Part shown: positions 3,560 through 64,000 of the stretch, one piece after another | How positions within the stretch are numbered: the first letter of the stretch is position 1 | How the letters are laid out: the number at the start of each line of letters is the position of its first letter | Source: Macrostomum lignano | Taxonomy: Eukaryota | Length of the DNA: 64,000 nt | Assembly (NCBI GenBank): GCA_002269645.1 | Contig: NIVC01000890.1 | Coordinates: forward strand, 124,001-188,000 | Direction: 5' to 3' | Program-made: the position numbers and the translations under genes | The notes under the pieces: model-generated | The model's input: only the letters and a program-made list of their open reading frames with translations | Databases searched by the model: none | What the model was told of the DNA's origin: nothing

Positions 3560-3582
3560 CCAGATATTGCATTTAATACAGT

Positions 3583-32272: not shown

Positions 32273-32550
32273 ATGGCCGAGGCCCATCAAGCTGTAGTGT
32301 TCGCATTTAATATCACCGACCAGGGCGTCGAATTTGAATTCGATCACGACGCCCTGCTACGCGTCTGGGCGTCCGGAGTTCGAGCCTATAAAAAGTGGTA
32401 CGCCAGGTTTAAAAACCGACTGCGCAATGGGATTTATCCTGCTAAGCCGAGCAGCCTGCTAACAATGATGTTAGTGATGATCTTTGCCACTATGTTTGGC
32501 AACGATTTATCATTTGGCTATGTGAAACAGCTCAACCCGTTGCTTGTGCG
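32273..32550 (+). CDS. CPT1: CPT1-A exon 1
   Basis: MAEAHQAV...NPLLVR|GTGAGT. Confidence 0.92.
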
Positions 32551-35500
32551 GTGAGTGGCAAACAGTTTACACATTATTTACTCTCTGTACTAAGAGTTCT
32601 CTACTGCGGATGCTCTGAGCCTATCATGAAGCCTCTTTGTAGTCTCGGTGTAACGTCTTTTCCCTGCCTCTCTAACCCTACTTCTCTGTTTCCCTCCCCC
32701 ACTCCACTTCTACCTCCCTCTGTCAGACTTTCTCACCCTACTCTGCCTCCCCCTTCCACTCTACTCTCTCTCCCTCTCCTAGCCTTTCCCAACCCTACTT
32801 CTCTGTCTCCTCCCACACTACTCTTACCTCCATCTCTCAGCCCTTCTCAAGCCTACTTCTCTGTCTCCCACCTTGGCACTCCATGCACCTTTCATCACTA
32901 ATCCTATTCATAGTTTTTTATTTAATCCTTTTGATACCCCTATGCAGCTACTTAGGCGTGGTGCCGCCTCATGACACCTACGCCTCCTGCGCGCTAATAG
33001 CCTGCATACTGTGGCTACTAGTAGTGCTGATCTATAAGCTGCTGATTGGCCAGATGCTAGCCTATCACGGTTGGATGTACGAAGGCCGAGGTCGGGTGTC
33101 GCGACCGACCAAAGTGTGGGCGGTTCTGGCCAAAACTCTGTTAAGAAATCGTCGGCCGGGTTTGTTTTCGTTTCAAAACTCGCTGCCCCGTCTGCCGCTG
33201 CCGTCCGTTGGCGACACGGTGCGCCGGTATCTGGTCTCCATGGAGCCGCTGCTTGGCGACGAGGAAATGCTTGAAATGCGACGGTTGGCTGCCGAATTTC
33301 AGGTGGGTTTTCTTAATCTTGGCCGAGTGAGTCAGGCTACAATAGCGGATAGTGCGGTGAGGTAGGTAGACAAAAATAGTCAGTGAGGTAGACAAAGGTA
33401 AAATGAGGTGAGACAAAATAGGCTGAGTTAGCTTCAAAAGTAGGTAGAGTATAGGTAGCTACTGCGAGGGTACACGAGTTTGGCTACTCGAGTAGATAGA
33501 GGTAGCTACACAGGTAGAGGTAGCTGCACAGGTAGATTGAGGTAGCTACACAGATAGATAGAGGTAGCTGCACAGGTAGATAGAGGTAGCTACACAGGTG
33601 GAAGGAGGTAGCTACACAGGTAGATAGAGGTAGCTACACAGGTAGATAGAGGTAGCTGCACAGGTAAATAGAGGTAGCTGCACAAGTAAATAGACGTAGC
33701 TACACAGGTAGATAGAGGTAGCTACATAGGTAGATTAAGGGAGCTACACAGGTAGATAAGAGGTAGCTACACAGGTAGATAGAGGTAGCTGCACAGGTAG
33801 CTAGAGGTAGCTACACAGGTAGATAGAGGTAGCTGCACAGGTAGCTAGAGGTAGCTACACAGGTAGCTAGAGGTAGCTACACAGGTAGATAGAGGTAGCT
33901 GCACAGGTAAATAGACGTAGCTACACAGGTAGATAGAGGTAGCTACATAGGTAGATTAAGGGAGCTACACAGGTAGATAAGAGGTAGCTACACAGGTAGA
34001 TAAGAGGTAGCTGCACAGGTAGCTAGAGGTAGCTACACAGGTAGATAGAGGTAGCTGCACAGGTAGCTAGAGGTAGCTACACAGGTAGCTAGAGGTAGCT
34101 ACACAGGTAGCTAGAGGTAGCTACACAGGTAGCTAGAGGTAGCTACACAGGTAGATAGAGGTAGCTACACAGGTAGCTAAAGGTAGCTACAGAAGTAGAT
34201 AGATATAGGTGTTTATACCAACACCCGCAGAGCACGGGCATTGCCAGGAAGTTGCAATTCTATTTGCGCCTGAAATCCTGGTGGGCTCCGAACTACGTCA
34301 GCGATTGGTGGGAAGAATTTGTCTACTTGTACAGCCGCGACCCAATCATGGTGAACTCCAACTATTACGCAGTGGACGCGATATTCGTCAGGCCAACCCG
34401 GATTCAAGCTGCCAGGGCGGCAAACGTGTCCTGGGCGATGCTGCAGTTCTGGCGCCGCATCTGCCGGGAGGAGATGCCGCCGATTCTACTGAATGACACT
34501 GTGCCGCTGTGTAGCTGGCAGTATGAGAGACAGTTTGCCACTACTAGGATACCAGGTGAGCCAGTTCTTTTTCAAGATTAAAACCGCCATTTTTCAAGAT
34601 TAAAAGTGCCATTTTTTAAGATTAAAAGCACCATTTTCAAGGTTAAAAGTGCCACTTTTCAAGATTGAAAGTGCCATTTTCAAGGTTAAAAGTGCCATTT
34701 TTCAAGATTGAAAGTGCCATTTTCAAGGTTAAAAGTGCCATTTTTCAAGATTAAAAGCACCATTTTCAAGGTTAAAAGTGTCATTTTTCAAGATTGAAAG
34801 TGCCATTTTAAATAAAGATTAAAAGTGCCCTTTTTCAAGATTCAAAGTGCCATTTTTTAAGATTAAAAATGCCATTTTTCAAGATTAAAAGTGCCATTTT
34901 TAAATAAAGATTGAAAGTGCCATTTTTCAAGATTAAAAGTGCCATTTTTTAATAAAAATTGAAAGTGTCATTCTTCAGGATTAGAAGTGGCGCTTTTTAA
35001 AAAAAGTTTGGTTTTGATAAGTTTCATTATCTGGATTTAAAGTGCCAGTCAATTTGAAAAATAAACCCGTCTATTAATTGAACAGGCGAGGAGCGCGACT
35101 ACCTGATGCACCTGAACGACACGCGGCACATTGCCGTGTTCCACTCTGGCCGATTCTACAAGGTGTACTTCCACTATGGCAACCGCTGGCTGGAGCCGTG
35201 CGAGCTGGAGGCTCAGTTCCAGCGCATCGTTGACGACAAGTCGCCGCCTGCGCCAGGCGAGGCGGAGCTGGCGGCCCTGACGGCAGGCGAGCGGAAGGTC
35301 TGGGCTCGAGCCCGCAAAGACTTCTTTAGGCGAGGCGTCAACAAGACCAGTCTGGACGCTGTGGAGCGGGCGGCGTTCGTCCTTGTGCTGGACGATGAAG
35401 AGGCCGACTACGATCCCAAGGACGATTCGAAGCTGGACCACTTCGCCAAGAGCTTGCTGCATGGCAACGGGCGGAACCGCTGGTTCGACAAGTCCTTCTC

Positions 35501-38500
35501 GTTGATCGTGTTCGCCAATGGACGGGTGAGCTAAGCTAAGCTAAGTGTCATTAGTTATTATTCTCCTGACCGGAAATGATTTCGTAGGAAATAGCAGTTC
35601 AGACTGTAGGTGGCTTATGATAATCCCTATGGATAACAGTTCAGACTGGAAGTGCCCCCTGATAATCTATTTGGATAACAGTTAAGACTGGAAGTGGCCC
35701 CTGATAATCTATTTGGATAACAGTTTAGACCGGAAGTGGCCCCTGATAATCTATTTGGATAACAGTTTAGACCGGAAGTGGCCCCTGATAATCTATTTAG
35801 ATAACAGTTTAGACCGAAAGTGGCCCCTGATAATCTATTTGGATAACAGTTTAGACCGTAAGTGGCCCCTGATAATCTATTTGGATAACAGTTTAGACCG
35901 GAAGTGGCCCCTGATAATCTATTTGGATAACAGTTTAGACCGGAAGTGGCCCCTGATAATCTATTTGGATGACAGTTCAGACCGGAAGTGGCTCCTGATA
36001 ATCACTATGGATAAAAGTTCAGACCGGAAGTGGTCTTGATAATCCCTATGAATAGCAGTTCAGACCAGAAGTGGCCCCTGATGATACATACGAATAGTAG
36101 TTCTGACCGGAAGTGGCCTATGCTAGCTAGCTACTATGGATTATAGTTCGTGCTGTAACTGGTTTGACAAGACACAATTAACAGTATTGTGAAAATGTCT
36201 ATTTATAATTTTTTAAATTTTTATTTATAATCTCAAGTGAATCTCACTGTCATCTATCTAACTGGTTACAGATTGGCGTCAACGCAGAACACAGTTGGTA
36301 AGTTTTATATAAAAGTTGTATTTTATTGCTATTTATTTTACGGAAATTTTAGTGATAATAAAAAAAGCTTACCTTACTACTTTAGGGCCGATGCTCCAGT
36401 AATGTCGCAATTGTGGGAAGAGGCTGTCATCACCTATGACATTGTGCCAGACACTGGGTAATTCCATAATTTCATTTACCCGCTTAGGACTAAATTTCTA
36501 CGAAAATCCTCACATTTGTACTTAAAGTAGCTCGTTAATTTTTCAGCAAATATTTTAGTTGACATGTCTACTTGAATATTTTTATGCTTTTAGATACACT
36601 GCGACGGGTCATTGCAAGGGCACACCGAAAGGCCCCGTGCCCAACCCCATCCGCCTCCAGTGGGACCTCAACGACGCCTGTCGCTCCGTCATCGCCAGCC
36701 AGCTTCGCGTTGCCACCGACCTGCTGAACGACGTCGACCTTCACCTGGTCGTCCACCGGCAGTTCGGCAAAGGCGCCATGAAGCGCTGCTCGATGAGCCC
36801 CGACGCGTTCATCCAGCTGGCCCTGCAGCTGGCGTACTTCAGGGACAGCGGCGGCGAGTTCTGCCTGACCTACGAGGCCTCCATGACCCGGCTGTTCAAG
36901 GAGGGCCGCACGGAGACCGTCCGGTCCTGCACCAACGAGTCGTGCGCGTTTGTTCGCGCTATGGAAAGCGGCGCAAGCGTGAGTTTCACCTGCGGCGCTG
37001 TGCAACTGGTTCTCGATAGGCTACTGACAGTAGAAAGTACAGTAAAATGTAGCCTAGACTTAATTAGTTAGTAATCGAATTACATTACTGACAGTAATAA
37101 GTAAAGTAAAATGTAGCCTTAATTTAAATTATTTAAATTAGTGAGAAAAAACTAATTACACTACTGACAGTAGAAAGTAAAATAAAATGTAGCCTTGAAT
37201 TTAAATTATTTCAATTAGTGAGAAAAAAAACTAATTACACTACTGACAGTAGAAAGTTAAGTTCAAATTTAATTATTAATAAAATCTAACTACAATTACA
37301 CTACTGACAGAAAAAAGTACAGTCAAAATGTAGCTTTATTTTGATTAGCAAGAAATTTGAAATTCCAGTAGAAACTAGATTCAATTGAAACAAATAGTGA
37401 TTATACTTATATGAATAGTAGTTAAGTTATTTGAAAGTATTATAATTTAAATGTGTACTTTATTAGTCAAGTAGAACACTAAGAGTTAAAAGAAAAAATA
37501 ACCGACCTAAACTATATATTACTAGTCATTTTATATTTATTCTACTCATAGTAGACGTGAAAGGTAATATGTATAGGTACGATAATATGTAAACTATGTT
37601 TCCATTTTGTAAGTAAGATTTTTGTTTTCTTAGTACTCTTAAATTAGGGGACATCCATCCAATATCGGTATTTAGCAATGTCTGTTAGTTGTCACTTTGG
37701 TAATTTCGATAAGTGCCGGCGTGTAAGATGACTTTTATCTGTTTGATTGTGTTTAATCTTTAATCCTCTTAGTTAATAATTACTAATCATAATTCAGGTG
37801 CTTTGGAATTTAAGATTTCCATTAGTTGGATAATCGTAGACTCGTAGACTGCCCTTAGATTGATGTTTTTAGTCAGCAGGCAAAAATCTGTGGGATTTGT
37901 GAATTCATAAATCTGTAGGATTGGTGAATTGGTGAATCTGTAGGATTAATGAATTGGTGAATCTGTAAGATTAATGAATTGGTGAACCTGTAAGATTGGT
38001 GAATTGGTGAATCTGTAGGATTAATGAATTGGTGAATCTGTAAGATTAATGAATTGGTGAACCTGTAAGATTGATGAATTGGTGAATCTGTAAGATTAAT
38101 GAATTGGTGAATCTGTAAGATTGATGAATTGGTGAATCTGTAAGATTAATGAATTGGTGAATCTGTAAGATTAATGAATTGGTGAACCTGTAAGATTGGT
38201 GAATTGGTGAATCTGTAGGATTAATGAATTGGTGAATCTGTAAGATTAATGAATTGGTGAATCTGTAGGATTAATGAATTGGTGAATCTGTAAGATTAAT
38301 GAATTGGTGAATCTGTAAGATTAATGAATTGGTGAATCTGTAAGATTGATGAATTGGTGAATCTGTAGGATTAATGAATTGGTGAATCTGTAAGATTAAT
38401 GAATTGGTGAACCTGTAAGATTGGTGAATTGGTGAATCTGTAGGATTAATGAATTGGTGAACCTGTAAGATTGATGAATTGGTGAATCTGTAAGATTAAT

Positions 38501-41475
38501 GAATTGGTGAACCTGTAAGATTGATGAATTGGTGAATCTGTAAGATTAATGAATTGGTGAATCTGTAAGATTAATGAATTGGTGAATCTGTAAGATTAAT
38601 GAATTGGTGAACCTGTAAGATTGATGAATTGGTGAATCTGTAAGATTAATGAATTGGTGAACCTGTAAGATTGATGAATTGGTGAATCTGTAAGATTAAT
38701 GAATTGGTGAATCTGTAAGATTAATGAATTGGTGAATCTGTAAGATTAATGAATTGGTGAACCTGTAAGATTGATGAATTGGTGAATCTGTAAGATTAAT
38801 GAATTGGTGAACCTGTAAGATTGATGAATTGGTGAATCTGTAAGATTAATGAATTGGTGAATCTGTAAGATTAATGAATTGGTGAATCTGTAAGATTAAT
38901 GAATTGGTGAATCTGTAAGATTAATGAATTGGTGAATCTGTAAGATTAATGAATTGGTGAATTTGTAAGATTGATGAATTGGTGAATTTGTAAGATTAAT
39001 GAATTGGTGAACCTGTAAGATTGATGAATTGGTGAATCTGTAAGATTAATGAATTGGTGAATCTGTAAGATTAATGAATTGGTGAATCTGTAAGATTAAT
39101 GAATTGGTGAATCTGTAAGATTAATGAATTGGTGAATCTGTAAGATTAATGAATTGGTGAATCTGTAAGATTAATGAATTGGTGAATCTGTAAGATTAAT
39201 GAATTGGTGAATCTGTAAGATTAATGAATTGGTGAATCTGTAAGATTGATGAATTGGTGAATCTGTAAGATTAATGAATTGGTGAGTCTGTAAGATTAAT
39301 GAATTGGTGAATCTGTAAGATTAATGAATTGGTGAATCTGTAAGATTGATGAATTGGTGAACCTGTAAGATTGATGAATTGGTGAATCTGTAAGATTGAT
39401 GAATTGGTGAATCTGTAAGATTGATGAATTGGTGAATCTGTAAGATTGATGAATTGGTGAATTTGTAAGATTGATTAATTGGTGAATCTGTAAGATTGAT
39501 GAATTGGTGAATCTGTAAGATTGATGAATTGGTGAATCTGTAAGCTATACAAGATTATAATGCACCCTATTGATGCAGCAGATCATAGCGAGGTGAAGAA
39601 AAGTAGGAAAAGATTAATAGCTGCTGGGGAAGATTTTACACCGCCTTTTGCCAACTAAAAGTAAGTAAACGGGAGTCACAATAAATACCTATTGCAATCC
39701 TACAGTTCAGCAATTAGCTAAATAATAGGGCAAGTAAAACAGCCCACAAAAGACTAGAAGAAAATGCTATTGTTGCCAGAGAAATATCAAAGCTTTGTAT
39801 CGGAATTTATTTTGTTATTATAACGAACTGTAGCTATAACTACACTCCAATCTCTCCTTACGAGACTAAGCTAGTGCAAGTGGCGGCCTATCGGTTAATT
39901 TAAATTGGCTCTTTACTTACTCAAACTGTCTCTTTTTTTTCCAGAATGAGGAAGTTGTCCGCCTGCTCCGGCAAGCCTCGGAGAAGCACCAGACAATGTA
40001 CCGGGACGCCATGACTGGCAAAGGCGTGGACCGGCACCTGTTCACTCTGTACGTGGTGTCCAAGTACTGCAAGACCCAGTCGCCTTTCCTGGAGAAGGCG
40101 CTGCACTGCCAGTGGAAGCTGTCCACCTCGCAGACTCCGCACGGACAGACTAGCAAAATGGATTTGCACAAGAATCCGGATTTCTTGAGCGCCGGTGGCG
40201 GCTTCGGGCCCGTGTCTCACGACGGTTACGGTGTGTCCTACATCATTGCTGGGGAGGACACCGTCTTCTTCCATGTTAGCAGCCGCGTCAGCTCGGATAA
40301 AACGGTTCGTGTAGCTTTTGCTGTGCCTTAAATCCTCAGATGTTAGATCCTCAGATCCCAGATCCTCAGATGTCAGATCCTCAGATCCGAGATCCTCAGA
40401 TCCCAGATCCTCAGATCCCAGATCCCAGATCCTCAGATCCCAGATCCTCAGATCCCAGATCCTCAGATCCCAGATCCTCAGATCCCAGATCCTCAGATCC
40501 CAGATCCTCAGATCCCAGATCCTCAGATCCCAGATCCTCAGATCCCAGATCCTCAGATCCCAGATCCTCAGATCCCAGATCCTCAGCCTCCCAGATCCTC
40601 AGATCCCAGATCCTCAGATCCCAGATCCTCAGATCCCAGATCCTCAGATCCCAGATCCTCAGATCCCAGATCCTCAGATCCCAGATCCTCAGATCCCAGA
40701 TCCTCAGATCCCAGATCCTCAGATCCCAGATCCTCAGATCCCAGATCCTCAGATCCCAGATCCTCAGATCCCAGATCCTCAGATCCCAGATCCTCAGATC
40801 CCAGATCCTCAGATCCCAGATCCTCAGATCCCAGATCCTCAGATCCCAGATCCTCAGATCCCAGATCCTCAGATCCCAGATCCTCAGATCCCAGATCCTC
40901 AGATCCCAGATCCTCAGATCCCAGATCCTCAGATCCCAGATCCTCAGATCCCAGATCCTCAGATCTCAGATCCTTAGTTCCCTAGTCCTTAGGTCATGGG
41001 TCCTCAGACTCCAGATCCTAGTTCTTGAGATCCCAGCTCCCAGATGTCAGATCCCAGCTCCCAGATGTCAGATCCCAGCTCCCAGATGTCAGATCCCAGC
41101 TCCCAGATGTCAGATCCCAGCTCCCAGATGTCAGATCCCAGCTCCCAGATGTCAGATCCCAGCTCCCAGATGTCAGATCCCAGCACCCAGATGTCAGATC
41201 CCAGCTCCCAGATGTCAGATGTCAGATCCCAGATTCCAGATTCTCAGTTCCTAAAATCTTACGCGCTCGTATGCTAAATTTCAAGATTGTGCGATCCCTA
41301 AATTGCATTCCTAGTTCCTAAATCCCGAAATCTCCCGAATCTCAGTCAAGCGATCCTGATGTTGCAGTGCACACACTGTTCCTAGCTAATGCACTAATCA
41401 ATCATTTTGCAGGACTCCCGTCGATTCGGCGAGCAGATCTGCCGGGCTCTGCTGGATGTGAAAAATCTGTTTTGA
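32273..41475 (+). CDS. CPT1: Carnitine O-palmitoyltransferase 1, paralog A, 767 aa: join(32273-32550, 32948-33302, 34231-34555, 35086-35525, 36272-36297, 36386-36457, 36594-36978, 39945-40304, 41413-41475)
   Basis: MAEAHQAV N-terminus, two TM segments, [16 protein letters not shown], catalytic [34 protein letters not shown]. All introns are GT-AG and phase-compatible; 2304 nt. Confidence 0.95.
32948..33302 (+). CDS. CPT1: CPT1-A exon 2
   Basis: CAG|YLGVV...YHGWMYE...LAAEFQ|GTGGGT. Confidence 0.9.
33495..34200. repeat. 22-bp minisatellite (AGAGGTAGCTACACAGGTAGAT)n, CPT1-A intron 2
   Basis: Direct reading. Confidence 0.95.
34231..34555 (+). CDS. CPT1: CPT1-A exon 3
   Basis: CAG|STGIARKLQ...TTRIPG|GTGAG. 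Confidence 0.92.
34570..34990. repeat. 22-23-bp minisatellite (TTCAAGATTAAAAGTGCCATTT)n, CPT1-A intron 3
   Basis: Direct reading. Confidence 0.9.
35086..35525 (+). CDS. CPT1: CPT1-A exon 4
   Basis: CAG|EERDYL...RWFDKS...ANGR|GTGAG. Confidence 0.94.
35595..36120. repeat. 42-bp minisatellite (GATAACAGTTTAGACCGGAAGTGGCCCCTGATAATCTATTTG)n, CPT1-A intron 4
   Basis: Direct reading. Confidence 0.93.
36272..36297 (+). CDS. CPT1: CPT1-A exon 5 (26-nt micro-exon, catalytic His)
   Basis: CAG|IGVNAEHSW|GTAAG. Confidence 0.92.
36386..36457 (+). CDS. CPT1: CPT1-A exon 6
   Basis: TAG|[11 protein letters not shown]...PDTG|GTAAT. Confidence 0.9.
36594..36978 (+). CDS. CPT1: CPT1-A exon 7
   Basis: TAG|YTATGHC...SPDAFIQ...TYEASMTR...SGAS|GTGAGT. 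Confidence 0.94.
37910..39545. repeat. 25-bp minisatellite (TGTAAGATTAATGAATTGGTGAATC)n, CPT1-A intron 7
   Basis: About 65 units. Confidence 0.97.
39945..40304 (+). CDS. CPT1: CPT1-A exon 8
   Basis: CAG|NEEVV...DRHLF...GGFGPV...SSDKT|GTTCGT. Confidence 0.92.
40332..40975. repeat. 15-bp minisatellite (CAGATCCTCAGATCC)n, CPT1-A intron 8
   Basis: Direct reading. Confidence 0.97.
41030..41240. repeat. 21-bp minisatellite (CAGATGTCAGATCCCAGCTCC)n, CPT1-A intron 8
   Basis: Direct reading; related to the adjacent 15-mer. Confidence 0.93.
41413..41475 (+). CDS. CPT1: CPT1-A exon 9
   Basis: CAG|[20 protein letters not shown], homologous to the CPT1 C-terminal helix. Confidence 0.88.
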   Translation, partial: DSRRFGEQICRALLDVKNLF

Positions 41476-41807
41476 CTGCTGTCTGAGGTCGATTTTGCTT
41501 TGCGAACCCTGCCTATTATGAGTTGAATATATAACTAATTATATGACTAGTTTATTACATTGGTGCAATATTCGGTCAATATCTGTGCAATATATTTTTT
41601 AATTTATTGCTACGTTATACTGTAACATTATCCCGTTAAGTTTGTACTTAAACTGGAAGCTGAATTCGAGAAATATAACACAATTATATCCATGCAGATA
41701 GTCTACTAATATTTTATGACCTGCTGTTCAGACTTGCGTTTCCAGTACCTTGCTTTGCTATTCCGTTTGAACATGTACTGATTTTTCAATGCATAACATG
41801 AATGAAA

Positions 41808-44745: not shown

Positions 44746-45339
44746 TATTAGTTTCTGTGCAATAGCTGGGCATTAGTAAATACACTCCAGTCCATAATTT
44801 TATCTTTTATTGAAATTGTGAGATATAGCGTTTTATTGTCTTAATTGACACCATCGGTTTTACGAGCTAGTTGCATTTAAGGGCCTAAAACATTATAGTT
44901 CTAATGACTAAAGTTGCCTAAATTACCGCATCATATAAACTTTTTTCTATCTTGTTTTTTAAAATTTTATTGGCGTTTTATTGCGAACTACTTGTTTTTA
45001 TAAGCGATTTACAATAATTATTGGCAAACCCTTTGATTTTTAATTAATATTTAATTTATCCTGTTTTTGCCGTTGTCTTCTGCATTGGCTCTGTTTATAG
45101 GGTTCTGTTGTACAATTGTAGCATTTTACATTGATTCTTAGATTAAGAAAGAACACGAATCATACATGTTTTGCTTTTTTGCGGAGACAATTCTGTTGGA
45201 CATAAATAATGCTAATTGATTTCATTATTTTATTTTAAAGTCTGATTAAAATTAGGTGTATTAAGTATACTAGGTGTATTAGTGTATTAAGCATAAGGAA
45301 TGTATTTATGACTGAATCTGCTTATGACCCAATGAGTAG

Positions 45340-47150: not shown

Positions 47151-47166
47151 ATCTTCATGACGAATC

Positions 47167-47673
47167 ATGGCCGAAGCTCATCAAGCGGTGGTGTTTGCTT
47201 TCAACATCACGGACGAAGGCATCCAGCTGGACTTTGATCACACGGTGCTACGCGAAGTGTTCGCCTCAATAGTGCGCAGCTACAAGAAAGGCATCGGCAG
47301 GCTGAAGAACCGGGTATGGAACAGCACCTACCCGATGGGACCCAAGAGTTTCTGTCTGGCCCTGTTTGGCGGCACCAGCGCCGCACTGCTAGGCCGGGAT
47401 CCAACGTTTGGATGCGGAGCAAAAATTGAAAGCCTAATTAGTCGATTTGTCACCGTGCCGGCTCCGTATAATCGCTACCTGGCCGTGTCGATCTTCTCCG
47501 GCTTTTCCTGGCTAGCCGTTGCCAGAGTGTACAAGTCTGTGCAGAGTCAGCTGCTGGCCTATCACGGCTGGATGTACGAGGTGCGCGGCCCGACCTCCTG
47601 GCGGACCAAGCTGTGGTACGGCGCCTGCCGCGTCTTGCTCTGGTCGTCTGGGGCTAGTTTGTTTAGCTTCCAG
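47167..47673 (+). CDS. CPT1: CPT1-B exon 1
   Basis: MAEAHQAV...SLFSFQ|GTGAGT. Confidence 0.92.
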
Positions 47674-50600: not shown

Positions 50601-53600
50601 CCAAAGGCGAGGAGCGCGACTACCTGATGCACCTGAACGACACGCGGCACATTGCCGTGTTCCACTCTGGCCGATTCTACAAGGTGTACTTCCACTACGG
50701 CAACCGCTGGCTGGAGCCGTGCGAGCTGGAGGCGCAGTTCCAGCGCATCGTTGACGACAAGTCGCCGCCTGCGCCAGGCGAGGCGGAGCTGGCGGCCCTA
50801 ACGGCAGGCGAGCGGAAGGTCTGGGCTCGAGCCCGCAAAGACTTCTTTAGGCGAGGCGTCAACAAGACCAGTCTGGACGCTGTGGAGCGGGCGGCGTTCG
50901 TCCTTGTGCTGGACGATGAAGAGGCCGACTACGATCCCAAGGACGACTCGAAGCTGGACCACTTCGCCAAGAGCCTGTTGCATGGCAACGGGCGGAACCG
51001 CTGGTTCGACAAGTCCTTCTCGCTGATCGTGTTCGCCAATGGACGGGTAAGCGCTTAGTTACCAAGTTGGGTTCATTACTGACCTATCCTTGACCCACAT
51101 CTGACCAGCTGTTACTGACCTATCCTTGACCCACAACTGACCAGCTGTTACTGACATATCCTTGACCCACATCTGACCAGCTGTTACTGACCTATCCTTG
51201 ACCCACATCTGACCAGCTGTTACTGACCTATCCTTGACCCACATCTGACCAGCTGTTACTGACCTATCCTTGACCCACATCTGACCAGCTGTTACTGACC
51301 TATCCTTGACCCACATCTGACCAGCTGTTACTGACCTATCCTTGACCCACATCTGACCTGTTACTGAACTATCCTTGACCCACATCTGACCAGCTGTTAC
51401 TGATCTATCCTTGACCCACATCTGACCAGCTGTTTCTGACCTATCATTGACCCACATCTGACCAGCTGTTACTGACCTATCCTTGACCCACATCTGACCA
51501 GCTGTTACTGACATATCCTTGACCCACATCTGACCAGCTGTTACTGACCTATCCTTGACCCACATCTGACCAGCTGTTACTGACCTATCCTTGACCCACA
51601 TCTGACCAGCTGTTACTGACCTATCCTTGACCCACATCTGACCAGCTGTTACTGACATATCCTTGACCCACATCTGACCAGCTGTTACTGACCTATCCTT
51701 GACCCACATCTGACCAGCTGTTACTGACCTATCCTTGACCCACATCTGACCAGCTGTTACTGACCTATCCTTGACCCACATCTGACCAGCTGTTACTGAC
51801 CTATCCTTGACCCACATCTGACCAGCTGTTACTGACCTATCCTTGACCCACATCTGACCAGCTGTTTCTGACCTATCATTGACCCACATCTGATCAGCTG
51901 TTTCTGACCTATCCTTGACCCACATCTGACAGCTGTTACTGACATATCCTTGACCCACATCTGACCTGTTACTGAACTATCCTTGACCCACATCTGACCA
52001 GCTGTTACTGACCTATCCTTGACCCACATCTGACCAGCTGTTACTGACCTATCCTTGACCCACATCTGACCAGCTGTTACTGACCTATCCTTGACCCACA
52101 TCTGACCAGCTGTTACTGACCTATCCTTGACCCACATCTGACCAGCTGTTTCTGACCTATCATTGACCCACGTCTGACCAGCTGTTACTTACCTATCCTT
52201 GACCCACGTCTGACCAGCTGTTAATGACCTATCCTTGACCCACAAATGACATGTCTCTTACCTATCCTTGCCAAACATCCAACCTGTTATGGTCTTCTCT
52301 TGCATTGAAAATGTAAGCCATCTAGCTAGTGCTATGGAGAATTTGCAGTAATAAACTAATAAAGCTTTGATACAATATATACTGCTCAAGCTAAATAAAT
52401 GAATAAAATAAAAAACTTCTCCCTTAAGAGAATTAAAACAAAAACCACCCATTAATCCCAATCTGTATTGAATTATTGAAATATTTACTTATATAGAATT
52501 TTTCACTTTTTATTTAGGAATTCAAAAATTCCTTCCAAGACAAAATTCAATGCTTAGCTTCAATGCTCCCCCATACACGATTTTGGCCATAGACAATCGT
52601 CAAAGCATGGGCTGAATATGGTTAGCCGTGTCTTAAATTCCATGCTCTCCCCATACACGATTTTGGCCATAGACAATCGCCAAAGCATGGGCTGAATATG
52701 GTTGGCCGTGTCTTAAATTCAATGCTCTCCTCATACACGATTTTGGCCATAGACAATCGTCAAAGCATGGGCTGAATATGGTTAGCCGTGTCTTAAATTC
52801 CATGCTCTCCCCATACACGATTTTGGCCATAGACAATCGCCAAAGCATGGGCTGAATATGGTTAGCCGTGTCTTAAATTCAATGCTCTCCCCATACACGA
52901 TTTTGGCCATAGACAATCGCCAAAGCATGGGCTGAATATGGTTGGCCGTGTCCTAATTCAATGCTCTCCCTATACACGATTTTGGCCATAGACAATCGCC
53001 AAAGCATGGGCTGAATATGGTTGGCCGTGTCTTAAATTCAATGCTCTCCTCATACACGATTTTGGCCATAGACAATCGCCAAAGCATGGGCTGAATATGG
53101 TTGGCCGTGTCCTAATTCAATGCTCTCCCTATACACGATTTTGGCCATAGACAATCGCCAAAGCATGCGCTGAATATGGTTAGCCGTGTCTTAAATTCAA
53201 TGCTCTCCCCATACACGATTTTGGCCATAGACAATCGCCAAAGCATGGGCTGAATATGGTTGGCCGTGTCTTAAATTCAATGCTCTCCCCATACACGGTT
53301 TTGGCCATAGACAATCGCCAAAGCATGCGCTGAATATGGTTAGCCGTGTCTTAAATTCAATGCTCTCCCTATACACGGTTTTGGCCATAGACAATCGTCA
53401 AAGCATGGGCTGAATATGGTTAGCCGTGTCTTAAATTCAATGCTCTCCCCATACACGGTTTTGGCCATAGACAATCGTCAAAGCATGGGCTGAATATGGT
53501 TAGCCGTGTCTTAAATTCAATGCTCTCCCCATACACGGTTTTGGCCATATACAATCGTCAAAGCATGCGCTGAATATGGTTAGCCGTGTCTTAAATTCAA

Positions 53601-56600
53601 TGCTCTCCCCATACACGATTTTGGCCATAGACAATCGCCAAAGCATGGGCTGAATATGGTTGGCCGTGTCCTAATTCAATGCTCTCCCTATACACGATTT
53701 TGGCCATAGACAATCGCCAAAGCATGGGCTGAATATGGTTGGCCGTGTCTTAAATTCAATGCTCTCCTCATACACGATTTTGGCCATAGACAATCGCCAA
53801 AGCATGGGCTGAATATGGTTGGCCGTGTCTTAAATTCAATGCTCTCCCCATACACGGTTTTGGCCATAGACAATCGCCAAAGCATGCGCTGAATATGGTT
53901 AGCCGTGTCTTAAATTCAATGCTCTCCCTATACACGGTTTTGGCCATAGACAATCGTCAAAGCATGGGCTGAATATGGTTAGCCGTGTCTTAAATTCAAT
54001 GCTCTCCCTATACACGGTTTTGGCCATAGACAATCGTCAAAGCATGGGCTGAATATGGTTAGCCGTGTCTTAAATTCAATGCTCTCCCCATACACGATTT
54101 TGGCCATAGACAATCGCCAAAGCATGCGCTGAATATGGTTGGCCGTGTCTTAAATTCAATGCTCTCCCCATACACGGTTTTGGCCATAGACAATCGTCAA
54201 AGCATGGGCTGAATATGGTTAGCCGTGTCTTAAATTCAATGCTCTCCCCATACACGGTTTTGGCCATAGACAATCGTCAAAGCATGCGCTGAATATGGTT
54301 AGCCGTGTCTTAAATTCAATGCTCTCCTCATACACGATTTTGGCCATAGACAATCGCCAAAGCATGGGCTGAATATGGTTGGCCGTGTCTTAAATTCAAT
54401 GCTCTCCCCATACACGGTTTTGGCCATAGACAATCGCCAAAGCATGCGCTGAATATGGTTAGCCGTGTCTTAAATTCAATGCTCTCCCTATACACGGTTT
54501 TGGCCATAGACAATCGTCAAAGCATGGGCTGAATATGGTTAGCCGTGTCTTAAATTCAATGCTCTCCCTATACACGGTTTTGGCCATAGACAATCGTCAA
54601 AGCATGGGCTGAATATGGTTAGCCGTGTCTTAAATTCAATGCTCTCCCCATACACGATTTTGGCCATAGACAATCGCCAAAGCATGCGCTGAATATGGTT
54701 GGCCGTGTCTTAAATTCAATGCTCTCCCTATACACGGTTTTGGCCATAGACAATCGTCAAAGCATGCGTTGAGTATGGTTTGCGCAGTCTGAAATTGAAT
54801 GTTCAAAATCGACCCAACAAATTGCTTTAAATGCATCACAAATACACAAAAACACATATCGAGATTAGGTTCGAGTGTTTAAAAGATTAATATTGTTCCA
54901 GGAACACATTCAGAAATCTCTTTCATTTCCAAAAGCGTTTTCTCTTCCTAATTTTCTACGAGCTCGTATTATAATTGTTTCTTTTCAAATAATTGCTTTT
55001 CTTAGAAGTGTCGTGTTTTTAAAATTGATTAAAAACTGATAAAATAATAGATTTGTTTTCTTATTATCTTTCCAGGTTGGCGTCAACTGCGAGCACAGCT
55101 GGTAAGTTGGCTGTTATTTAGTCCAATAATTTAAATTAATTTCATCATTTTATATCACTAGTATAGTGTCACGTGGTTTACCCTTCACTGTTCAGGGCCG
55201 ACGCTCCCGTGATGTCGCAGATGTGGGAAGCCGTTGTGTTCAACTACGATATTGTCGAAGATTGGTAAGGATTTTTTAATTTTTTTCCGGAGTTCTGTTT
55301 TTTTATTAGCTGACAATTCGACAAATCACAAGTGACAGATTTGACTTTGTTGTCTATGGCCGCGAGTGCAGTATCAATGGTCTCTTGGCCATAGACATTC
55401 TCAGCGAGCAGTCTGCGTTTCAAGGCAGCCAAGACTGTCGATGGTGGTCTGGCGCGGCGCTCTGATGTGCCAGCGGCCCAAGCTCGATTCCAAGTGCAGT
55501 CACATTAATTTGAGGCTTGGCTCTGATCGTGCATTAACAGTCTTGAGGGCCAAGCCCCAAGGCACAGTGAAGTGTACATGCCTAACGATAAATAAAGTCA
55601 GGGCCGCTGTACACTCCTGTGTGAGTGTGTGCCTGTGCGTCTGACTGCGCACGTATCCGCGCGCTTGTGTGCCTGCTCAGGGGAGTCGGCGGAATGGGCA
55701 GCAATGCCTCTCGCCGGTTGTGTGACAATGTCGCTTATTAAAGTGCGCCAGGGTGCACACAACCCCCTGTCCCTAATAAATATAAAAGCCAATCATATGG
55801 ATGGAATTGAATAGATTGCTAATCTAGCCAATTCTATAAATGATGGTATTAAAGATTTGCTAATCTAGCTAATTATATGAATCAGGCTACGGAGGACATG
55901 ATATGGGGTACATACCAGTGTTTCCCCCCCCCCACCTTGTGACCCGTTGTGGTGGTAATCAATAATTTTTCTTCAGAGCGCCAAAATGAGTGCCTGCGGT
56001 GCTAAAATAAGTGCCTGCGGTGCTAAAATGAGTGCCTGCGGCGCTAAAATGAGTGCCTGCGGTGCTAAAATGAGTGCCTGCGGTGCTAAAATGAGTGCCT
56101 GCGGTGCTAAAATGAGTGCCTGCGGTGCTAAAATGAGTGCCTGCGGTGCTAAAATGAGTGCCTGCGGTGCTAAAATGAGTGCCTGCGGTGCTAAAATGAG
56201 TGCCTGAGGCGCTAAAATGAGTGCCTGCGGTGCTAAAATGAGTGCCTGCGGTGCTAAAATGAGTGCCTGAGGCGCTAAAATGAGTGCCTGCGGTGCTAAA
56301 ATGAGTGCCTGCGGTGCTAAAATGAGTGCCTGCGGTGCTAAAATGAGTGCCTGCGGTGCTAAAATAAGTGCCTGCGGTGCTAAAATGAGTGCCTGCGGTG
56401 CTAAAATGAGTGCCTGAGGCGCTAAAATGAGTGCCTGCGGTGCTAAAATGAGTGCCTGCGGTGCTAAAATGAGTGCCTGCGGTGCTAAAATGAGTGCCTG
56501 CGGTGCTAAAATAAGTGCCTGCGGTGCTAAAATGAGTGCCTGCGGTGCTAAAATAAGTGCCTGCGGTGCTAAAATGAGTGCCTGCGGTGCTAAAATGAGT

Positions 56601-59442
56601 GCCTGCGGTGCTAAAATGAGTGCCTGCGGTGCTAAAATGAGTGCCCGCGGCGCTAAAATGAGTGCCTGCGGCGCTAAAATGAGTGCCTGCGGCGCTAAAA
56701 TGAGTGCCTGCGGCGCTAAAATGAGTGCCTGCGGTGCTAAAATGAGTGCCTGCGGTGCTAAAATGAGTGCCTGCGGTGCTAAAATAAGTGCCTGCGGTGC
56801 TAAAAGGAATCCCTGAGGCGCCAAAATGAGTGCCTGCGGCGCCAAAAGGAATCCCTGAGGCGCCAAAATGAGTGCCTGCGGCGCCAAAAGGAATCCCTGA
56901 GGCGCCAAAATGAGTGCCTGCGGCGCCAAAATGAGCGCTGACAACACCGATTCTTGAAATACTAGACATGTAGGAGTTTAGTCATGTACATGTACGAGTA
57001 TATGCTGAGTTCTTGGCTTTGTCCCCCCACATAAAAATCCTATGAATAACCATTGAACTGCGGTCGCTTTCACAAGCTCGATATTTTGTCAGCTTACCGA
57101 AAATGATTTGCAAAACTTTTTCAACATTCGAAACTTATCTAAAAGTAGCCCTCGTACTTTGAATCTTATCAATCAGCATCATCATTGAATTGCTGCGCTC
57201 CCACAGCTACCGGTCCAACGGTCACTGCCGCGGTCAGACGCGCAACAACGTGCCCAACCCCATCCGCCTGCAGTGGGACCTCAACGACGCCTGTCGCTCC
57301 GTCATCGCCAGCCAGCTTCGGGTTGCCACCGACCTGCTGAACGACGTCGACCTTCACCTGGTCGTCCACCGGCAGTTCGGCAAAGGCGCCATGAAGCGCT
57401 GCTCGATGAGCCCCGACGCGTTCATCCAGCTGGCCCTGCAGCTGGCGTACTTCAGGGACAGCGGCGGCGAGTTCTGCCTGACCTACGAGGCCTCCATGAC
57501 CCGGCTGTTCAAGGAGGGCCGCACGGAGACCGTCCGGTCCTGCACCAACGAGTCGTGCGCGTTTGTTCGCGCTATGGAAAGCGGCGCTAGCGTGAGTTTC
57601 ACCTGCGGCGCTGTGCAACTGGTTCTCGATAGGCTACTGACAGTAGAAAGTACAGTAAAATGTAGCCTAGACTTAATTAGTTAGTAATCGAATTACACTA
57701 CTGACTGTAGAGAGGGAATTAAAATGCAGCCTAAAGTCAATTAGTAAGAAAATCTAATTACACTGCTGACAGAAGAAAGTAAAGTAAAATGTAGCCTAAA
57801 CTTAATTAGTTAGTAATCGAATTACATTACTGACAGTAAAAAGTAAAGTAAAATGTAACCTTGAATTCAAATTATTTAAATTAGTGAGAAAAAACGAATT
57901 ACACTACTTACAGAAGAAAGTAAAGCAAAATGTTGTCTAAATTTAATTAGGGAGACAATCTAATTACACTACTTACAGAAGTAAGTAAAGGAAAATGTTT
58001 TCTAAATTTAATTAGTGCAAAAATCTAATTACACTACTGACACATTATTCACTGGCTCTGAAATACGAAAAGGGGTATCGAATAAAAAGGCAGCAATATA
58101 AAAAGTGTGCATTTTTTCTCCTCGATCAAGACAAGGTACTTTTGATCGTGCAAGCTTAATAGAGCTCCGCCTAAAATTTATAAATGAATTGATAGGGTGA
58201 GCCATAACAGTCCGGCCCAGCAGAGGTCACGTGACCGCGTCTTATTTATCCAATAGGGGTTCGTATCGTTCAACCAATCCGGCTCAGCAGAGGTCACGTG
58301 ACCCCGCCTTATTTATCCAATAGGGGTTCGTATTGTCTAAACAGTCCGGCCCAGCAGGGGTTACGTGACCGCGTCTTATTTATCCAATAGGGGTTCGTAT
58401 CGTCCAACCAATCCGGCCCAGCAGAGGTCACGTGACCCCGCCTAACCCAATCGCTGTTTTTTTCCAGAATGAGGAAGTTGTCCGCCTGCTCCGGCAAGCC
58501 TCGGAGAAGCACCAAACAATGTACCGGGACGCCATGACTGGCAAAGGCGTGGACCGGCACCTGTTTACCCTGTACGTGGTGTCCAAGTACTGCAAGATCC
58601 AGTCGCCTTTCCTGGAGAAGGCGCTGCACTGCCAGTGGAAGCTGTCCACCTCGCAGACTCCGCACGGACAGACTAACGTGCTGGACTTGGAGAAGCATCC
58701 CGACTTTTTGAGCGCTGGCGGCGGCTTCGGGCCCGTGTCTCAGGACGGCTATGGTGTGTCCTACATCATTGCTGGAGAGAACACCGTCTTCTTTCACGTC
58801 AGCAGTCGCGTCAGCTGCGACAAGACGGTTCGTGTAGCTTTTGCTGCTTAAATATCGAATGGAATGGATTGCTAGTCTAGCCAATCATATATAGATAACT
58901 TGGAATAAATGGATTGCTAATCTAGCCTATAATATATAGATAAATTGGAATAGAATGGATTGCTAATCTAGCCAATCATATATAGTTGAATTGGAATAGA
59001 ATGGATTGCTAATCTAGCCAATCATATATAGTTGAATTGGAATAGAATGGATTGCTAATCTAGCCAATCATATATACATGAATTGGAATAGAATGGATTG
59101 CTAATCTAGCCAATCATATATAGTTGAATTGGAATAGAATGGATTGCTAATCTAGCCAATCATATATACATGAATTGGAATAGAATGGATTGCTAATCTA
59201 GCCAATCATATATAGTTGAATTGGAATAGAATGGATTGCTAATCTAGCCAATCATATATAGTTGAATTGGAATAGAATGGATTGCTAATCTAGCCAATCA
59301 TATATAGTTGAGTTAGAATAAAATGGATTGCTAATCTATCTCGCAGGACTCAAAGCGTTTCGGCGGAACCATCGTGAAGGCTCTGGCCGATCTGAGAACT
59401 CTCCTAGAAGAAGATGTCGCTGCCAAGAAGAAAGCAAAATAA
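47167..59442 (+). CDS. CPT1: Carnitine O-palmitoyltransferase 1, paralog B, 776 aa: join(47167-47673, 48146-48445, 48723-48870, 50607-51046, 55076-55101, 55196-55264, 57207-57591, 58468-58827, 59347-59442)
   Basis: Same CPT1 motifs as paralog A; all introns GT-AG and phase-compatible; 2331 nt, no internal stop. Confidence 0.95.
47690..48115. repeat. Degenerate about 60-bp repeat with GCCGATATGTATCGAAAT core, CPT1-B intron 1
   Basis: Core motif recurs about 7 times. Confidence 0.75.
48146..48445 (+). CDS. CPT1: CPT1-B exon 2
   Basis: CAG|GCLPTLPVP...NYVSDWWEE...PSNVQ|GTGAG. Confidence 0.92.
48505..48700. repeat. 24-bp minisatellite (AGGTTAGCGAATTCCCAGTTGAGT)n, CPT1-B intron 2
   Basis: About 8 units. 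Confidence 0.95.
48723..48870 (+). CDS. CPT1: CPT1-B exon 3
   Basis: CAG|VARAAN...TTRIPG|GTGAGT. Confidence 0.92.
48895..50525. repeat. 18-bp minisatellite (TTGATCTTACCGCCTCCT)n in two blocks (48895-49312, 50105-50525) split by a LINE fragment, CPT1-B intron 3
   Basis: Direct reading. Confidence 0.9.
49316..50090 (-). mobile_element. Decayed LOA-like LINE fragment (RNase H domain)
   Basis: Minus strand, across frameshifts: [58 protein letters not shown]; collinear with the RNase H of ORF2 at about 6410-6790. Confidence 0.85.
50607..51046 (+). CDS. CPT1: CPT1-B exon 4
   Basis: AAG|EERDYL...ANGR|GTAAG; protein identical to A exon 4. Confidence 0.93.
51075..52245. repeat. 36-bp minisatellite (TGACCTATCCTTGACCCACATCTGACCAGCTGTTAC)n, CPT1-B intron 4
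   Basis: About 32 units. Confidence 0.97.
52556..54790. repeat. 80-bp satellite (AATGCTCTCCCCATACACGATTTTGGCCATAGACAATCGCCAAAGCATGGGCTGAATATGGTTGGCCGTGTCTTAAATTC)n, CPT1-B intron 4
   Basis: About 28 units, period 79-80. Confidence 0.97.
55076..55101 (+). CDS. CPT1: CPT1-B exon 5 (26-nt micro-exon, catalytic His)
   Basis: CAG|VGVNCEHSW|GTAAG. Confidence 0.92.
55196..55264 (+). CDS. CPT1: CPT1-B exon 6
   Basis: CAG|[11 protein letters not shown]...VEDC|GTAAG. Confidence 0.9.
55440..55787 (+). mobile_element. tRNA-derived SINE, second and more diverged copy
   Basis: Aligns along its length with 43310-43660 (B box AGCTCGATTCC, GGGCCGCTGTACACTCCTGTGTGAGTGTG, GCGGAATGGGC, 3' hairpin, AATAAATATAAAA tail); 5' A box degraded. 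Confidence 0.88.
55975..56935. repeat. 21-bp minisatellite (GCGGTGCTAAAATGAGTGCCT)n, CPT1-B intron 6
   Basis: About 45 units. Confidence 0.97.
57207..57591 (+). CDS. CPT1: CPT1-B exon 7
   Basis: CAG|YRSNGHC...SGAS|GTGAGT. Confidence 0.94.
58207..58445. repeat. 67-bp tandem repeat (about 3.6 units) carrying the GGTCACGTGACC palindrome and CCAAT, CPT1-B intron 7
   Basis: Palindrome at 58225, 58292, 58359 (variant) and 58426. Confidence 0.92.
58468..58827 (+). CDS. CPT1: CPT1-B exon 8
   Basis: CAG|NEEVV...SCDKT|GTTCGT. Confidence 0.92.
58857..59338. repeat. 42-bp satellite family, inverted copy, CPT1-B intron 8
   Basis: Reverse complement of the 41808-44745 monomer; a short inverted remnant also lies at 55788-55880. 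Confidence 0.92.
59347..59442 (+). CDS. CPT1: CPT1-B exon 9
   Basis: CAG|[31 protein letters not shown]. Confidence 0.88.
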   Translation, partial: DSKRFGGTIVKALADLRTLLEEDVAAKKKAK

Positions 59443-62600: not shown

Positions 62601-62949
62601 TCATACTTTCTAATTAAAAGAAACTGTTAGCTTTACTCAAATATAAGGCGTCTTTCAATTACATGTAGACAGCTGCACTTGCCTTCCCAGATATTCTATG
62701 ACCCAAGTTCCTATCCAGATAATTCCGCTCCCAATATAGTAAAGATAAACAAGCCGAATCTTTAATTCATGAGACCCATGCTGCCCCCTAAGCAATGCCG
62801 TGAGTGTCGCAACTCGCACTCTCTTATTGGTCCTTAGCTCGTGGACCAATAGCAGGCGCCTGCAGCTGCCATACATACAGAATGCGTCTTGGCAGCAGAT
62901 TCACGCAGGCCTGTAGCATCATTCCTGAATCACACAGAAGCGGTCAGTC

Positions 62950-63534: not shown

Positions 63535-64000
63535 GTGAGCTCAACTACTGAAAGTAGCTATTGCCAAGTTCAGTATTACAGTAATACTTGGTCACTTAAA
63601 TCAACAAAAATTAGAGTAATAAACTATCATACGATGACCTCATATACTCATCATTTGATGGCGTCATAAATTAATTTCAAGCTGAGTTTGCACTGTTTGA
63701 GGACATCATAGAATCAAAGCGTCGATTCTAGCGTCGATAGAATAATGTAATAACCTTGAAAGGCAAAGGCTGGCTTGTACCGCAAAATAGTTTGCTCTGT
63801 TGAACTGAAAATTGCAGAGAGATACCGGAAAGGGATGCCTCTTTTCCCAAGCAGAGTGGGAGGCTCATATTCAGTATATTGGGTGGGTACGCCCCGAGCT
63901 TCGTAGAGGGAAGGCAATGGGACGCACATAGACAGTGCAGGGATACAGACAATGAGGTGAGTCACACACAGACAGACAGACAGACAGAGAGAGACGGAGA

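Follow-up and report, generated by a model that had tools for sequence, protein, structure and literature searches.

How do two neighbouring genes come to be nearly identical in some of their exons and so diverged in the rest that synonymous sites are saturated? The question is raised by two intact CPT1 genes, A and B, which lie head-to-tail in a window of 64,000 nucleotides of Macrostomum lignano contig NIVC01000890.1. Outside three tracts, A and B are 60-65% identical, their dS is saturated and their introns are unrelated, whereas the tracts themselves are 98-99% identical, with an A-B dS of 0.04-0.07. We hypothesize, with a probability of roughly 0.85, that A and B are ancient tandem duplicates and that DNA-templated, homology-dependent non-allelic gene conversion overwrote these three stretches. 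The genes and the spacer between them were modelled as follows.

32273..41475, + strand: CPT1 paralog A, 9 exons, 767 aa
32273-32550, 32948-33302, 34231-34555, 35086-35525, 36272-36297, + strand: exons 1-5 of A, spliced model
36386-36457, 36594-36978, 39945-40304, 41413-41475, + strand: exons 6-9 of A, spliced model
47167..59442, + strand: CPT1 paralog B, 9 exons, 776 aa
47167-47673, 48146-48445, 48723-48870, 50607-51046, 55076-55101, + strand: exons 1-5 of B, spliced model
55196-55264, 57207-57591, 58468-58827, 59347-59442, + strand: exons 6-9 of B, spliced model
41812..47140, no strand: A-B intergenic spacer, almost wholly satellite (TRF)
41812-44742 and 45567-47140: spacer arrays, 42-nt x70 and 33-nt x48 respectively (TRF)

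The nine-exon models implied by an earlier, sequence-only reading of this DNA are right; all junctions are GT-AG and both open reading frames are intact. Paralog A is 99.7% identical to M. lignano protein P0001, a model that takes an alternative donor 30 nt into intron 7, and paralog B is 99.7% identical to P0003 (BOX15_Mlig017169g2). Purifying selection acts on both of these intact genes, with pN/pS ratios of 0.03-0.10 (0.10 for B between its homeologous copies). The tandem order recurs in another gene set, in which the UniProt models P0124 and P0127 are A-B fusions, and the 42-nt spacer array exceeds 9 kb in a homeologous contig. The same window also holds a LINE-like element at 3903-7321 that encodes a reverse transcriptase.

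By their domains and motifs, A and B are best regarded as CPT1 family members with a putative malonyl-CoA-sensitive activity. The Pfam domain CPT_N (PF16484, residues 1-47) scores 61.2 bits in A and 69.2 bits in B against a cut-off of 27, and Carn_acyltransf (PF00755) scores 599 and 610 bits over profile positions 1-573 of 574. The catalytic histidine motif EHSW lies at 472 in A and 471 in B, and LSTSQ at 686 and 684. Both proteins carry E3, H5 and TYEASM, as noted earlier, and R37 as well.

The divergence outside the tracts is old. A-B dS is 1.9-2.6, and thus saturated, in exons 1-3 and 5-6; protein identity is 54% over exons 1-3 and 56% over exons 5 and 6 with the beginning of exon 7, and at the nucleotide level A and B agree at 60% of exon 9, so that exons 1-3, 5, 6 and 9 are diverged as the sequence-only reading had it. 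That reading also held that the N-terminal regulatory half had diverged and the catalytic core had been homogenised, and both statements needed to be narrowed. The region comprising TM1, the loop and TM2 is indeed the most diverged part of the protein, but the regulatory peptide 1-47 is conserved (69 bits in B); parts of the catalytic domain are homogenised, but the mini-exon carrying the catalytic histidine (EHSW) is unconverted. Kyte-Doolittle profiles, from which TM helices are predicted here, show two peaks in A, in the M. lignano paralogs C and D, and in Capitella; B has no TM1 window of at least 1.2, and its TM2 reaches 1.31 versus 2.0-2.8 in the others. Judged from sequence, the two enzymes would share part of their catalytic domain and carry different membrane-anchor regions, and they may be regulated differently.

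The near-identical tracts, with the minisatellites and the less similar stretch that adjoin them, are these.

35086..35525, + strand: conversion tract 1, A copy, entire exon 4 (BLAST HSP 35084-35531 only)
50607..51046, + strand: conversion tract 1, B copy, entire exon 4
36636..37084, + strand: conversion tract 2, A copy, exon 7 nt 43-385 and on into intron 7 for ~106 nt
57249..57697, + strand: conversion tract 2, B copy (BLAST and border comparison across loci)
37021..37356, + strand: intron 7 minisatellite of A, 64-76-nt unit (TRF period 76)
57634..58042, + strand: intron 7 minisatellite of B, 64/65-nt unit (BLAST, TRF)
39934..40152, + strand: conversion tract 3, A copy, exon 8 nt 1-208 and the preceding 11 nt at the intron 7 acceptor
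58457..58675, + strand: conversion tract 3, B copy (BLAST and cross-locus comparison)
40153..40333, + strand: intermediate-divergence stretch, A, exon 8 nt 209-360 and on into intron 8 for ~29 nt
58676-58853: intermediate-divergence stretch, B counterpart

In exon 4, 7 of 440 nucleotides are mismatched between A and B and all 7 are synonymous (dS 0.072, dN 0), which agrees with the earlier count. The limits of the match coincide with the exon plus its AG and GTRAGC splice consensus. The flanking introns, said earlier to be unrelated, show nothing similar between A and B even at word size 7, although between homeologous copies of one gene the same introns align at 88-99%. Tract 2 behaves differently at its ends. 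The segment 36637-37084 versus 57250-57697 carries 3 mismatches in 448 nt, all of them synonymous and exonic (dS 0.038), and, as had been noted, it begins in mid-exon 7 at about nt 43 and passes the donor site at 36978 by 106 nt. In 3/3 loci the tract opens at exon 7 nt 42/43 and closes 107-119 nt into intron 7. The 3' end falls inside the intron 7 minisatellite of A; the intron 7 minisatellites of A and B are homologous, with BLAST matches at several offsets and 72-81% identity. Tract 3 contains 4 differences in exon 8 nt 1-208 (dS 0.064), of which one is fixed across loci, and differences become dense from nt 209, much where the drop in identity had been placed; fixed differences are likewise dense upstream of -12. 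The remainder of exon 8 (nt 209-360) is 82.4% identical with a dS of 0.80, against saturation elsewhere, and its HSP reaches into intron 8. Its tree is ambiguous, and it is probably an older, decayed conversion tract. A further candidate, the exon 3 similarity between 34247-34367 and 48285-48405 (82%), was rejected as an extra tract because A-C (84%) and B-C (82%) are equally similar there, as expected of protein conservation.

The tracts stand out statistically as well. The dS profile proposed as a check is not flat, at 0.04-0.07 in the tracts versus saturation outside them. A Sawyer-type permutation analysis gave P<1e-4, third codon positions alone likewise, and the longest concordant runs comprised 46 and 43 polymorphic sites versus a maximum of 17 in 10,000 permutations. 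The phylogenies (protein NJ trees from Kimura distances with bootstrap) are incongruent, the tracts giving one topology and the remainder of the gene another. Unconverted segments place A with C (98%) and A and C with D (98%), leaving B outside, whereas the tracts unite A with B (100%) and then with C (93%); exon 4 alone divides between A+B+C (48%) and A+B+D (51%). In other words, low dS in discrete tracts, saturation elsewhere and incongruent trees bear out the proposal of an old duplication followed by conversion.

The direction of transfer was probably from A to B, because the tract sequence takes the position and the rate of A in the trees. The distance of the tracts to outgroups is 0.64, as against 0.63 for C, and thus lacks the acceleration of B, whose unconverted parts lie at 0.96-1.04 versus 0.77-0.82; B is, however, a long branch in these protein trees, a caveat on the direction. 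A search of a protein database for orthologs from sister species with the N-terminal 319 aa of B returned best matches of 45-56% identity and none closer. Within the tracts A and B have a GC3 of 0.86, compared with 0.76 in C and 0.81 in D, whereas outside them A is at or below C and D. The excess of A over C is supported by a paired test (61:29, p=0.001), and that over D alone is not significant (p=0.10).

The mosaic is replicated at three homeologous loci, NIVC01000890.1, NIVC01000392.1 and NIVC01001332.1, all drawn from one PacBio assembly, and the tract borders are identical. These contigs were separately assembled and differ in private substitutions and satellite lengths; exon 4 of B in the window is 100% identical to exon 4 of B on NIVC01000392.1. 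Four A/B differences are fixed in 3/3 loci (exon 4 nt 194; exon 7 nt 64 and 115; exon 8 nt 99). The shared borders and fixed differences suggest that the last homogenisation is about as old as the split of the M. lignano subgenomes, and the persistence of those four differences implies that there has been no complete re-homogenisation since. The description of the conversion as recurrent is therefore only partly upheld. The three tracts, the intermediate exon 8 stretch (dS 0.8) and the GC3 excess are indirect signs that would fit repeated exchange between A and B, but ongoing exchange is not demonstrable. In exon 4, the window's copy of A has 6 private sites; comparison with paralog C split them 3:3 and so could not polarise them, C being saturated in dS.

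Could the near-identity have arisen without conversion? If the duplication were recent, the tracts would record its true age and the rest of B would have undergone explosive divergence through relaxed or positive selection. The protein-level acceleration of unconverted B (0.96-1.04 vs 0.77-0.82) is what this account predicts, but it would leave unexplained a saturated dS of 1.9-2.6 outside the tracts, A-B introns that are unalignable while those of the same gene have kept 88-99% identity across a similar span of time, introns 1 and 2 at different positions in A and B, and the grouping of A with C rather than B at 98%; we regard it as very unlikely. Nor does constraint on synonymous sites, by splicing enhancers or RNA structure, offer a way out. 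It is true that the differences in tracts 1 and 2 are all synonymous and that the tracts lie within conserved protein regions, yet in exactly these segments C and D differ from A and B with dS of 0.63-1.47. Because A-C and B-C both fall in that range, synonymous constraint is absent, and near-identity also runs into intron 7, which leaves this explanation with next to no probability. An artefact of assembly, collapse or polishing deserves consideration in a neopolyploid, repeat-rich genome whose three homeologous subgenomes make assembly difficult (PMC10733133), all the more since the window comes from one contig, taken from one PacBio assembly. However, the same borders and fixed diagnostic differences occur in three separately assembled contigs, the proteins of another gene set have an exon 4 peptide common to A-type and B-type in the same tandem order, and polishing would be unable to raise ~75% identity to 98% over 440 nt with the adjacent introns unaltered, so that an artefact is highly improbable.

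The nature of the template is a separate matter, as the exact coincidence of tract 1 with an exon had led the sequence-only reading to suggest conversion from RNA, that is, repair templated by reverse-transcribed A mRNA. Several observations lean that way: the exon 4 match spans only 35084-35531 with unrelated flanks at all loci, the exon 8 tract begins at most 11 nt from the acceptor, the LINE-like element with a reverse transcriptase (3903-7321) lies in the window, and several ancestral introns have been lost in the CPT1 gene family. Against it, tract 2 extends about 107-119 nt into intron 7 at the three loci, and its template was therefore genomic DNA. Exons 5 and 6 and the first 42 nt of exon 7 sit between converted exons, which they would adjoin in a cDNA, and have escaped conversion (dS 1.9), and introns 4-7 are all retained, with none lost between or beside converted exons. 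The exon-exact borders are expected of DNA conversion too, because introns without shared homology limit it, and A-B introns do not align whereas same-gene introns do so between loci. The suggestion of RNA templating thus finds no support at this locus, and we consider it unlikely.

We propose instead that DNA-templated conversion acted on an old duplicate pair. B would have branched off ahead of the A/C and (A,C)/D duplications, or would at least lie outside them, and A-type sequence would later have entered B at exon 4, from exon 7 nt 43 to the start of intron 7, and at exon 8 nt 1-208. The ends of the tracts would be the ends of uninterrupted homology; with introns made of private, fast-turning-over minisatellites, a tract filling a long exon would end at the splice sites. 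Neither the short exons, of 26, 72 and 63 nt, nor the 5' half, whose structure is rearranged, would have been converted, and the last homogenisation would fall at about the time when the three subgenomes separated. Prior to conversion, identity between the exons probably stood at only about 75-80%, a low figure for starting homologous exchange.

Seven intron positions in the 5' half are paralog-specific and missing from the tapeworm, annelid and oyster CPT1 genes that served as outgroups, the Sparganum gene being among those used. By residue they are as follows.

169, 270: B
251, 345: C
302: D
211: A and D
319: A and B

An all-against-all BLAST of the new introns for a shared 'introner-like' element gave no match. 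In the 5' half, A-B exon homology is split into pieces of about 126-278 nt; the long exons with shared borders measure 440, 385 and 360 nt. We would suggest only tentatively, and with some doubt, that post-duplication gain of minisatellite-filled introns broke up this homology and limits concerted evolution, such that the membrane-anchor half escaped while three long exons kept exchanging. If true, introns gained recently in a flatworm would here have directly shaped the divergence of paralogs. The intron positions, and introns composed of private minisatellites, bear on the origin of new introns and could prove more broadly interesting than the conversion.

The locus provides an invertebrate case of mosaic concerted evolution in which part of the catalytic domain is near-identical and the transmembrane and linker regions are ~45-55% identical, and its three homeologous copies, as natural replicates, place the exchange at approximately the polyploidisation. 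In practical terms, exons 4, 7 and 8 of M. lignano CPT1 mislead paralog trees, dS dating and short-read or RNA-seq mapping. Literature searches turned up no account of gene conversion at CPT1, nor of intron gain, in Macrostomum.

Vertebrates have CPT1 isoforms of their own, CPT1A, CPT1B and CPT1C, paralogs that differ mainly outside the catalytic fold. Like them, A and B combine CPT_N with Carn_acyltransf and carry E3, H5, R37, the TYEASM Met, EHSW and STS; the M589S change of CPT1C and the Glu3-Arg37 interaction have been described in vertebrate CPT1 (PMC6927751). Unlike them, Macrostomum A-D are lineage-specific duplicates (ABCD monophyly 100%) and not orthologs, and the TM region of B is unusually weakly hydrophobic; sequence exchange is not known among the vertebrate isoforms. 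With cDNA-mediated recombination, which has been invoked for intron loss, the locus has in common the exon-exact ends of tract 1 and the loss of introns in the history of the family; it departs from that process in the introns kept beside converted exons, the intron sequence in tract 2 and the unconverted mini-exons.

The closest parallels are with interlocus gene conversion. This is textbook mosaic concerted evolution of a type already known, to which the CPT1 pair adds an example. Conversion between linked paralogs occurs in deer-mouse globins (PMC4379404) and is reported for the voltage-gated sodium channel paralogs of toxic newts (PMC8476164); mammalian pairs are those of Carson and Scherer 2009, cited in PMC3199776, and the conversion tract of the Capitella Dlxa/Dlxb homeobox genes reaches into the adjoining intron (PMC3199776). 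As in such cases, the genes are linked duplicates, old and diverged, with sharp tracts of near-identity, a Sawyer/GENECONV-type signal, conserved domain exons, spill into an intron and a rise in GC3. What sets the M. lignano pair apart is that it has been triplicated by recent polyploidisation, which dates the last event, that its tracts correspond to the three longest exons with shared borders, and that its introns are private minisatellites whose positions differ in the unconverted half.

Spliced models of the two neighbouring CPT1 genes, A and B, were guided by their best protein matches, which are M. lignano CPT1 proteins.

32273-41475 (+): CPT1 gene A, 9 exons, 767 aa
47167-59442 (+): CPT1 gene B, 9 exons, 776 aa

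The genes are arranged head to tail with 5.7 kb of satellite DNA in between. In both, every junction is GT-AG, the ORF is intact, the CPT_N and Carn_acyltransf domains (Pfam) are complete, and the EHSW, TYEASM and STS motifs are all present. Among database models, those of NCBI for A are truncated (620-629 aa), P0001 reads 30 nt of intron 7 (36979-37008; 10 residues) and keeps part of intron 2, and the UniProt models P0124 and P0127 join A and B into one protein. The 42-nt intergenic satellite (41812-44742) has related inverted arrays in B intron 6 (55800-55882) and B intron 8 (58857-59338); its array spans 2.9 kb in the window versus more than 9 kb in a homeologous contig (L001 1-9020). Two further features lie outside the CPT1 genes.

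1982-7321 (+): LINE-type retrotransposon with long open frames, in order a 525-aa ORF without assigned domain, AP-endonuclease (Exo_endo_phos_2), reverse transcriptase (RVT_1) and RNase H
62929-63666 (+): 246-aa ORF with a sub-threshold Pfam match to the 7TM GPCR family Srsx (19.5 bits, cut-off 24.1)

Near-identity and saturation alternate along A and B. The counts of the sequence-only reading all hold: A and B differ at 7 of the 440 positions in exon 4 and, between 36637-37084 and 57250-57697, at 3 of 448, every difference being synonymous. By BLAST, A and B are homologous in exons; outside them, homology is limited to ~370 nt at the start of intron 7 and ~29 nt past exon 8.

A-B identity and dS (Nei-Gojobori) by segment
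Exons 1-3: 59.5%, dS 2.6 (saturated)
Exon 4 (tract 1): 98.4%, dS 0.072
Exons 5-6 and exon 7 nt 1-42: 64.5%, dS 1.9
Exon 7 nt 43-385 (tract 2, which continues into intron 7): 99.1%, dS 0.038
Exon 8 nt 1-208 (tract 3): 98.1%, dS 0.064
Exon 8 nt 209-360: 82.4%, dS 0.80
Exon 9: 60%, dS 0.81

Synonymous constraint is excluded as the cause of the tract identity, because within the tracts dS between either gene and a further M. lignano paralog, C, is 0.63-1.47. In a Sawyer-type test the longest concordant runs cover 46 and 43 polymorphic sites, a length that never exceeded 17 in 10,000 permutations; with third positions only, the runs are 28 and 27 against 19.

The exon 4 tract genuinely stops at the exon borders, since its 400-nt intron flanks are 88-99% identical between homeologs of one gene, whereas the flanks of A and B show no match at any locus. 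From this stop at splice sites it had been proposed that conversion was RNA-templated, and a cDNA template would indeed produce such exact borders. However, three observations speak against a cDNA template: tract 2 takes in ~107 nt of intron 7 and ends in a 64-76-nt minisatellite common to A and B; no intron has been lost; and the segment that cDNA would make contiguous with the converted exons on either side (exon 5, 26 nt; exon 6, 72 nt; exon 7 nt 1-42) is unconverted. Nor is an RNA template required for the exact borders, because almost all introns are private minisatellites, so that homology and heteroduplex formation stop at splice sites. Conversion may also need a minimum length of uninterrupted homology, in which case only long exons with shared borders would be converted. 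The pattern is the one expected, as the converted exons are only the three longest with shared borders (440, 385 and 360 nt). Across 32666-59338, most of the length of nearly all A and B introns is taken up by a minisatellite of their own (period 15-80 nt, as many as 66 copies); B intron 2 (48446-48722) is largely a 24-mer in 8.5 copies.

Trees (neighbour-joining, Kimura distances, bootstrap percentages) were built from A, B, C (P0002, locus L002), a fourth M. lignano paralog D (P0004/P0129, locus L006) and five outgroup CPT1s. Unconverted segments group A+C (98%) and A+C+D (98%) and leave B outside. The tracts group A+B (100%) and A+B+C (93%), and therefore the shared tract sequence takes the tree position of A. 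That sequence lies on average 0.64 from the outgroups, versus 0.63 for C, without the acceleration typical of B, which in unconverted parts lies at 0.96-1.04 versus 0.77-0.82 for A and C. We infer from these sequence comparisons that B received A-type sequence by copying, with the caveats that B is a long branch and that exon 4 alone is ambiguous (A+B+C 48%, A+B+D 51%).

The A-B locus is present three times in the assembly, as is C, consistent with the three homeologous subgenomes of M. lignano (PMC10733133).

NIVC01000890.1: the window (L004 matches 22252-49949 with 0 mismatches)
NIVC01000392.1: L003 (A) and L001 (B)
NIVC01001332.1: L005 (A)

These replicate loci, together with the A-B fused UniProt models, rule out a simple assembly artefact. 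Every copy has the same tract borders (exon 7 nt 42/43; intron 7 at 107-119 nt; ~11 nt 5' of exon 8; exon 8 nt 208/209). The last homogenisation took place at roughly the time of the subgenome split, with no complete re-homogenisation later. This follows because A and B keep four fixed differences within the tracts at every locus (exon 4 nt 194, exon 7 nt 64 and 115, exon 8 nt 99), and because pS is 0.035-0.039 among homeologous A copies and 0.011 between the two available B copies (pN/pS 0.03-0.10), while tract A-B pS, by our own tally from difference tables and Nei-Gojobori synonymous-site counts, is ~0.056 at the window locus and ~0.034 on NIVC01000392.1. Exon 4 carries 7 A-B differences in the window versus 3 in each of the other two loci, and window A exon 4 (35086-35525) has six private synonymous differences that set it apart from each of the five remaining A and B copies of this exon; these could reflect later patchy exchange or plain rate noise. 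Between the window and NIVC01000392.1, the B copies have pS 0.011 (6 synonymous differences) versus 0.035 (19) for the A copies, despite A and B lying just 6-15 kb apart. Homeologous exchange affecting B, or chance, may explain the lower value.

Four indirect signs in the sequence suggest more than one conversion event. Among them, the three tracts are separate, exon 8 nt 209-360 is intermediate in divergence with identity running on into intron 8, and the intron 7 minisatellite common to A and B is 72-81% identical. The fourth sign is GC3, which in the tracts is 0.86 in A and B, 0.76 in C and 0.81 in D, while outside the tracts A does not exceed C and D. The excess (paired test in tracts, A versus C 61:29, p=0.001; A versus D p=0.10) is consistent with GC-biased conversion, though not decisive.

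Intron positions were placed on a common alignment, numbered by A residues. Positions 92, 466, 474, ~498, 627 and 747 are common to Macrostomum and to Capitella (annelid), Saccostrea (oyster) and/or Sparganum (tapeworm), and ancestral introns 47, 151, 186 and 362 are missing in all four Macrostomum paralogs. The remaining positions are paralog-specific.

169, 270: B only
251, 345: C only
302: D only
211: A and D
319: A and B
Regions with differing 5'-half introns: window 32551-35085 and 47674-50606; L002 11461-13955; L006 6604-7790

None of these seven occurs in the CPT1 of the three outgroups, which suggests that 5'-half introns were gained after duplication, on top of loss. A common (introner-like) element was not found among the new introns; AG|GT...AG|GT junction repeats flank four of the nine new introns and none of six ancestral ones. 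Intron gain may have broken up homology in the 5' half, helping it escape conversion.

The proposal of a shared catalytic core and a diverged regulatory half stands in part. EHSW, with the catalytic His, is encoded by the mini-exon 5/6 region, which is unconverted, and B conserves regulatory peptide 1-47 (CPT_N 69 bits), with E3, H5 and R37 kept. In mammalian CPT1A, E3/H5 and Met593 set malonyl-CoA sensitivity. The part that diverges most is TM1-loop-TM2 (pN 0.45-0.55), which in B (47300-47560, residues ~48-125) is much less hydrophobic than in A, C, D and Capitella: in 19-residue windows TM1 has none at or above 1.2, and TM2 peaks at 1.31 versus 2.0-2.8 in A, C and Capitella. Because of this divergence and weak hydrophobicity, it is plausible that A and B differ in membrane anchoring. 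They may also differ in regulation. In CPT1C, R37 and E3 interact (PMC6927751).

No report of gene conversion in Macrostomum CPT1 was found in the literature searched. Mosaic conversion of linked paralogs is well documented, as are converted tracts reaching into introns (PMC3199776), and the A/B mosaic is a further case of this type of interlocus gene conversion.
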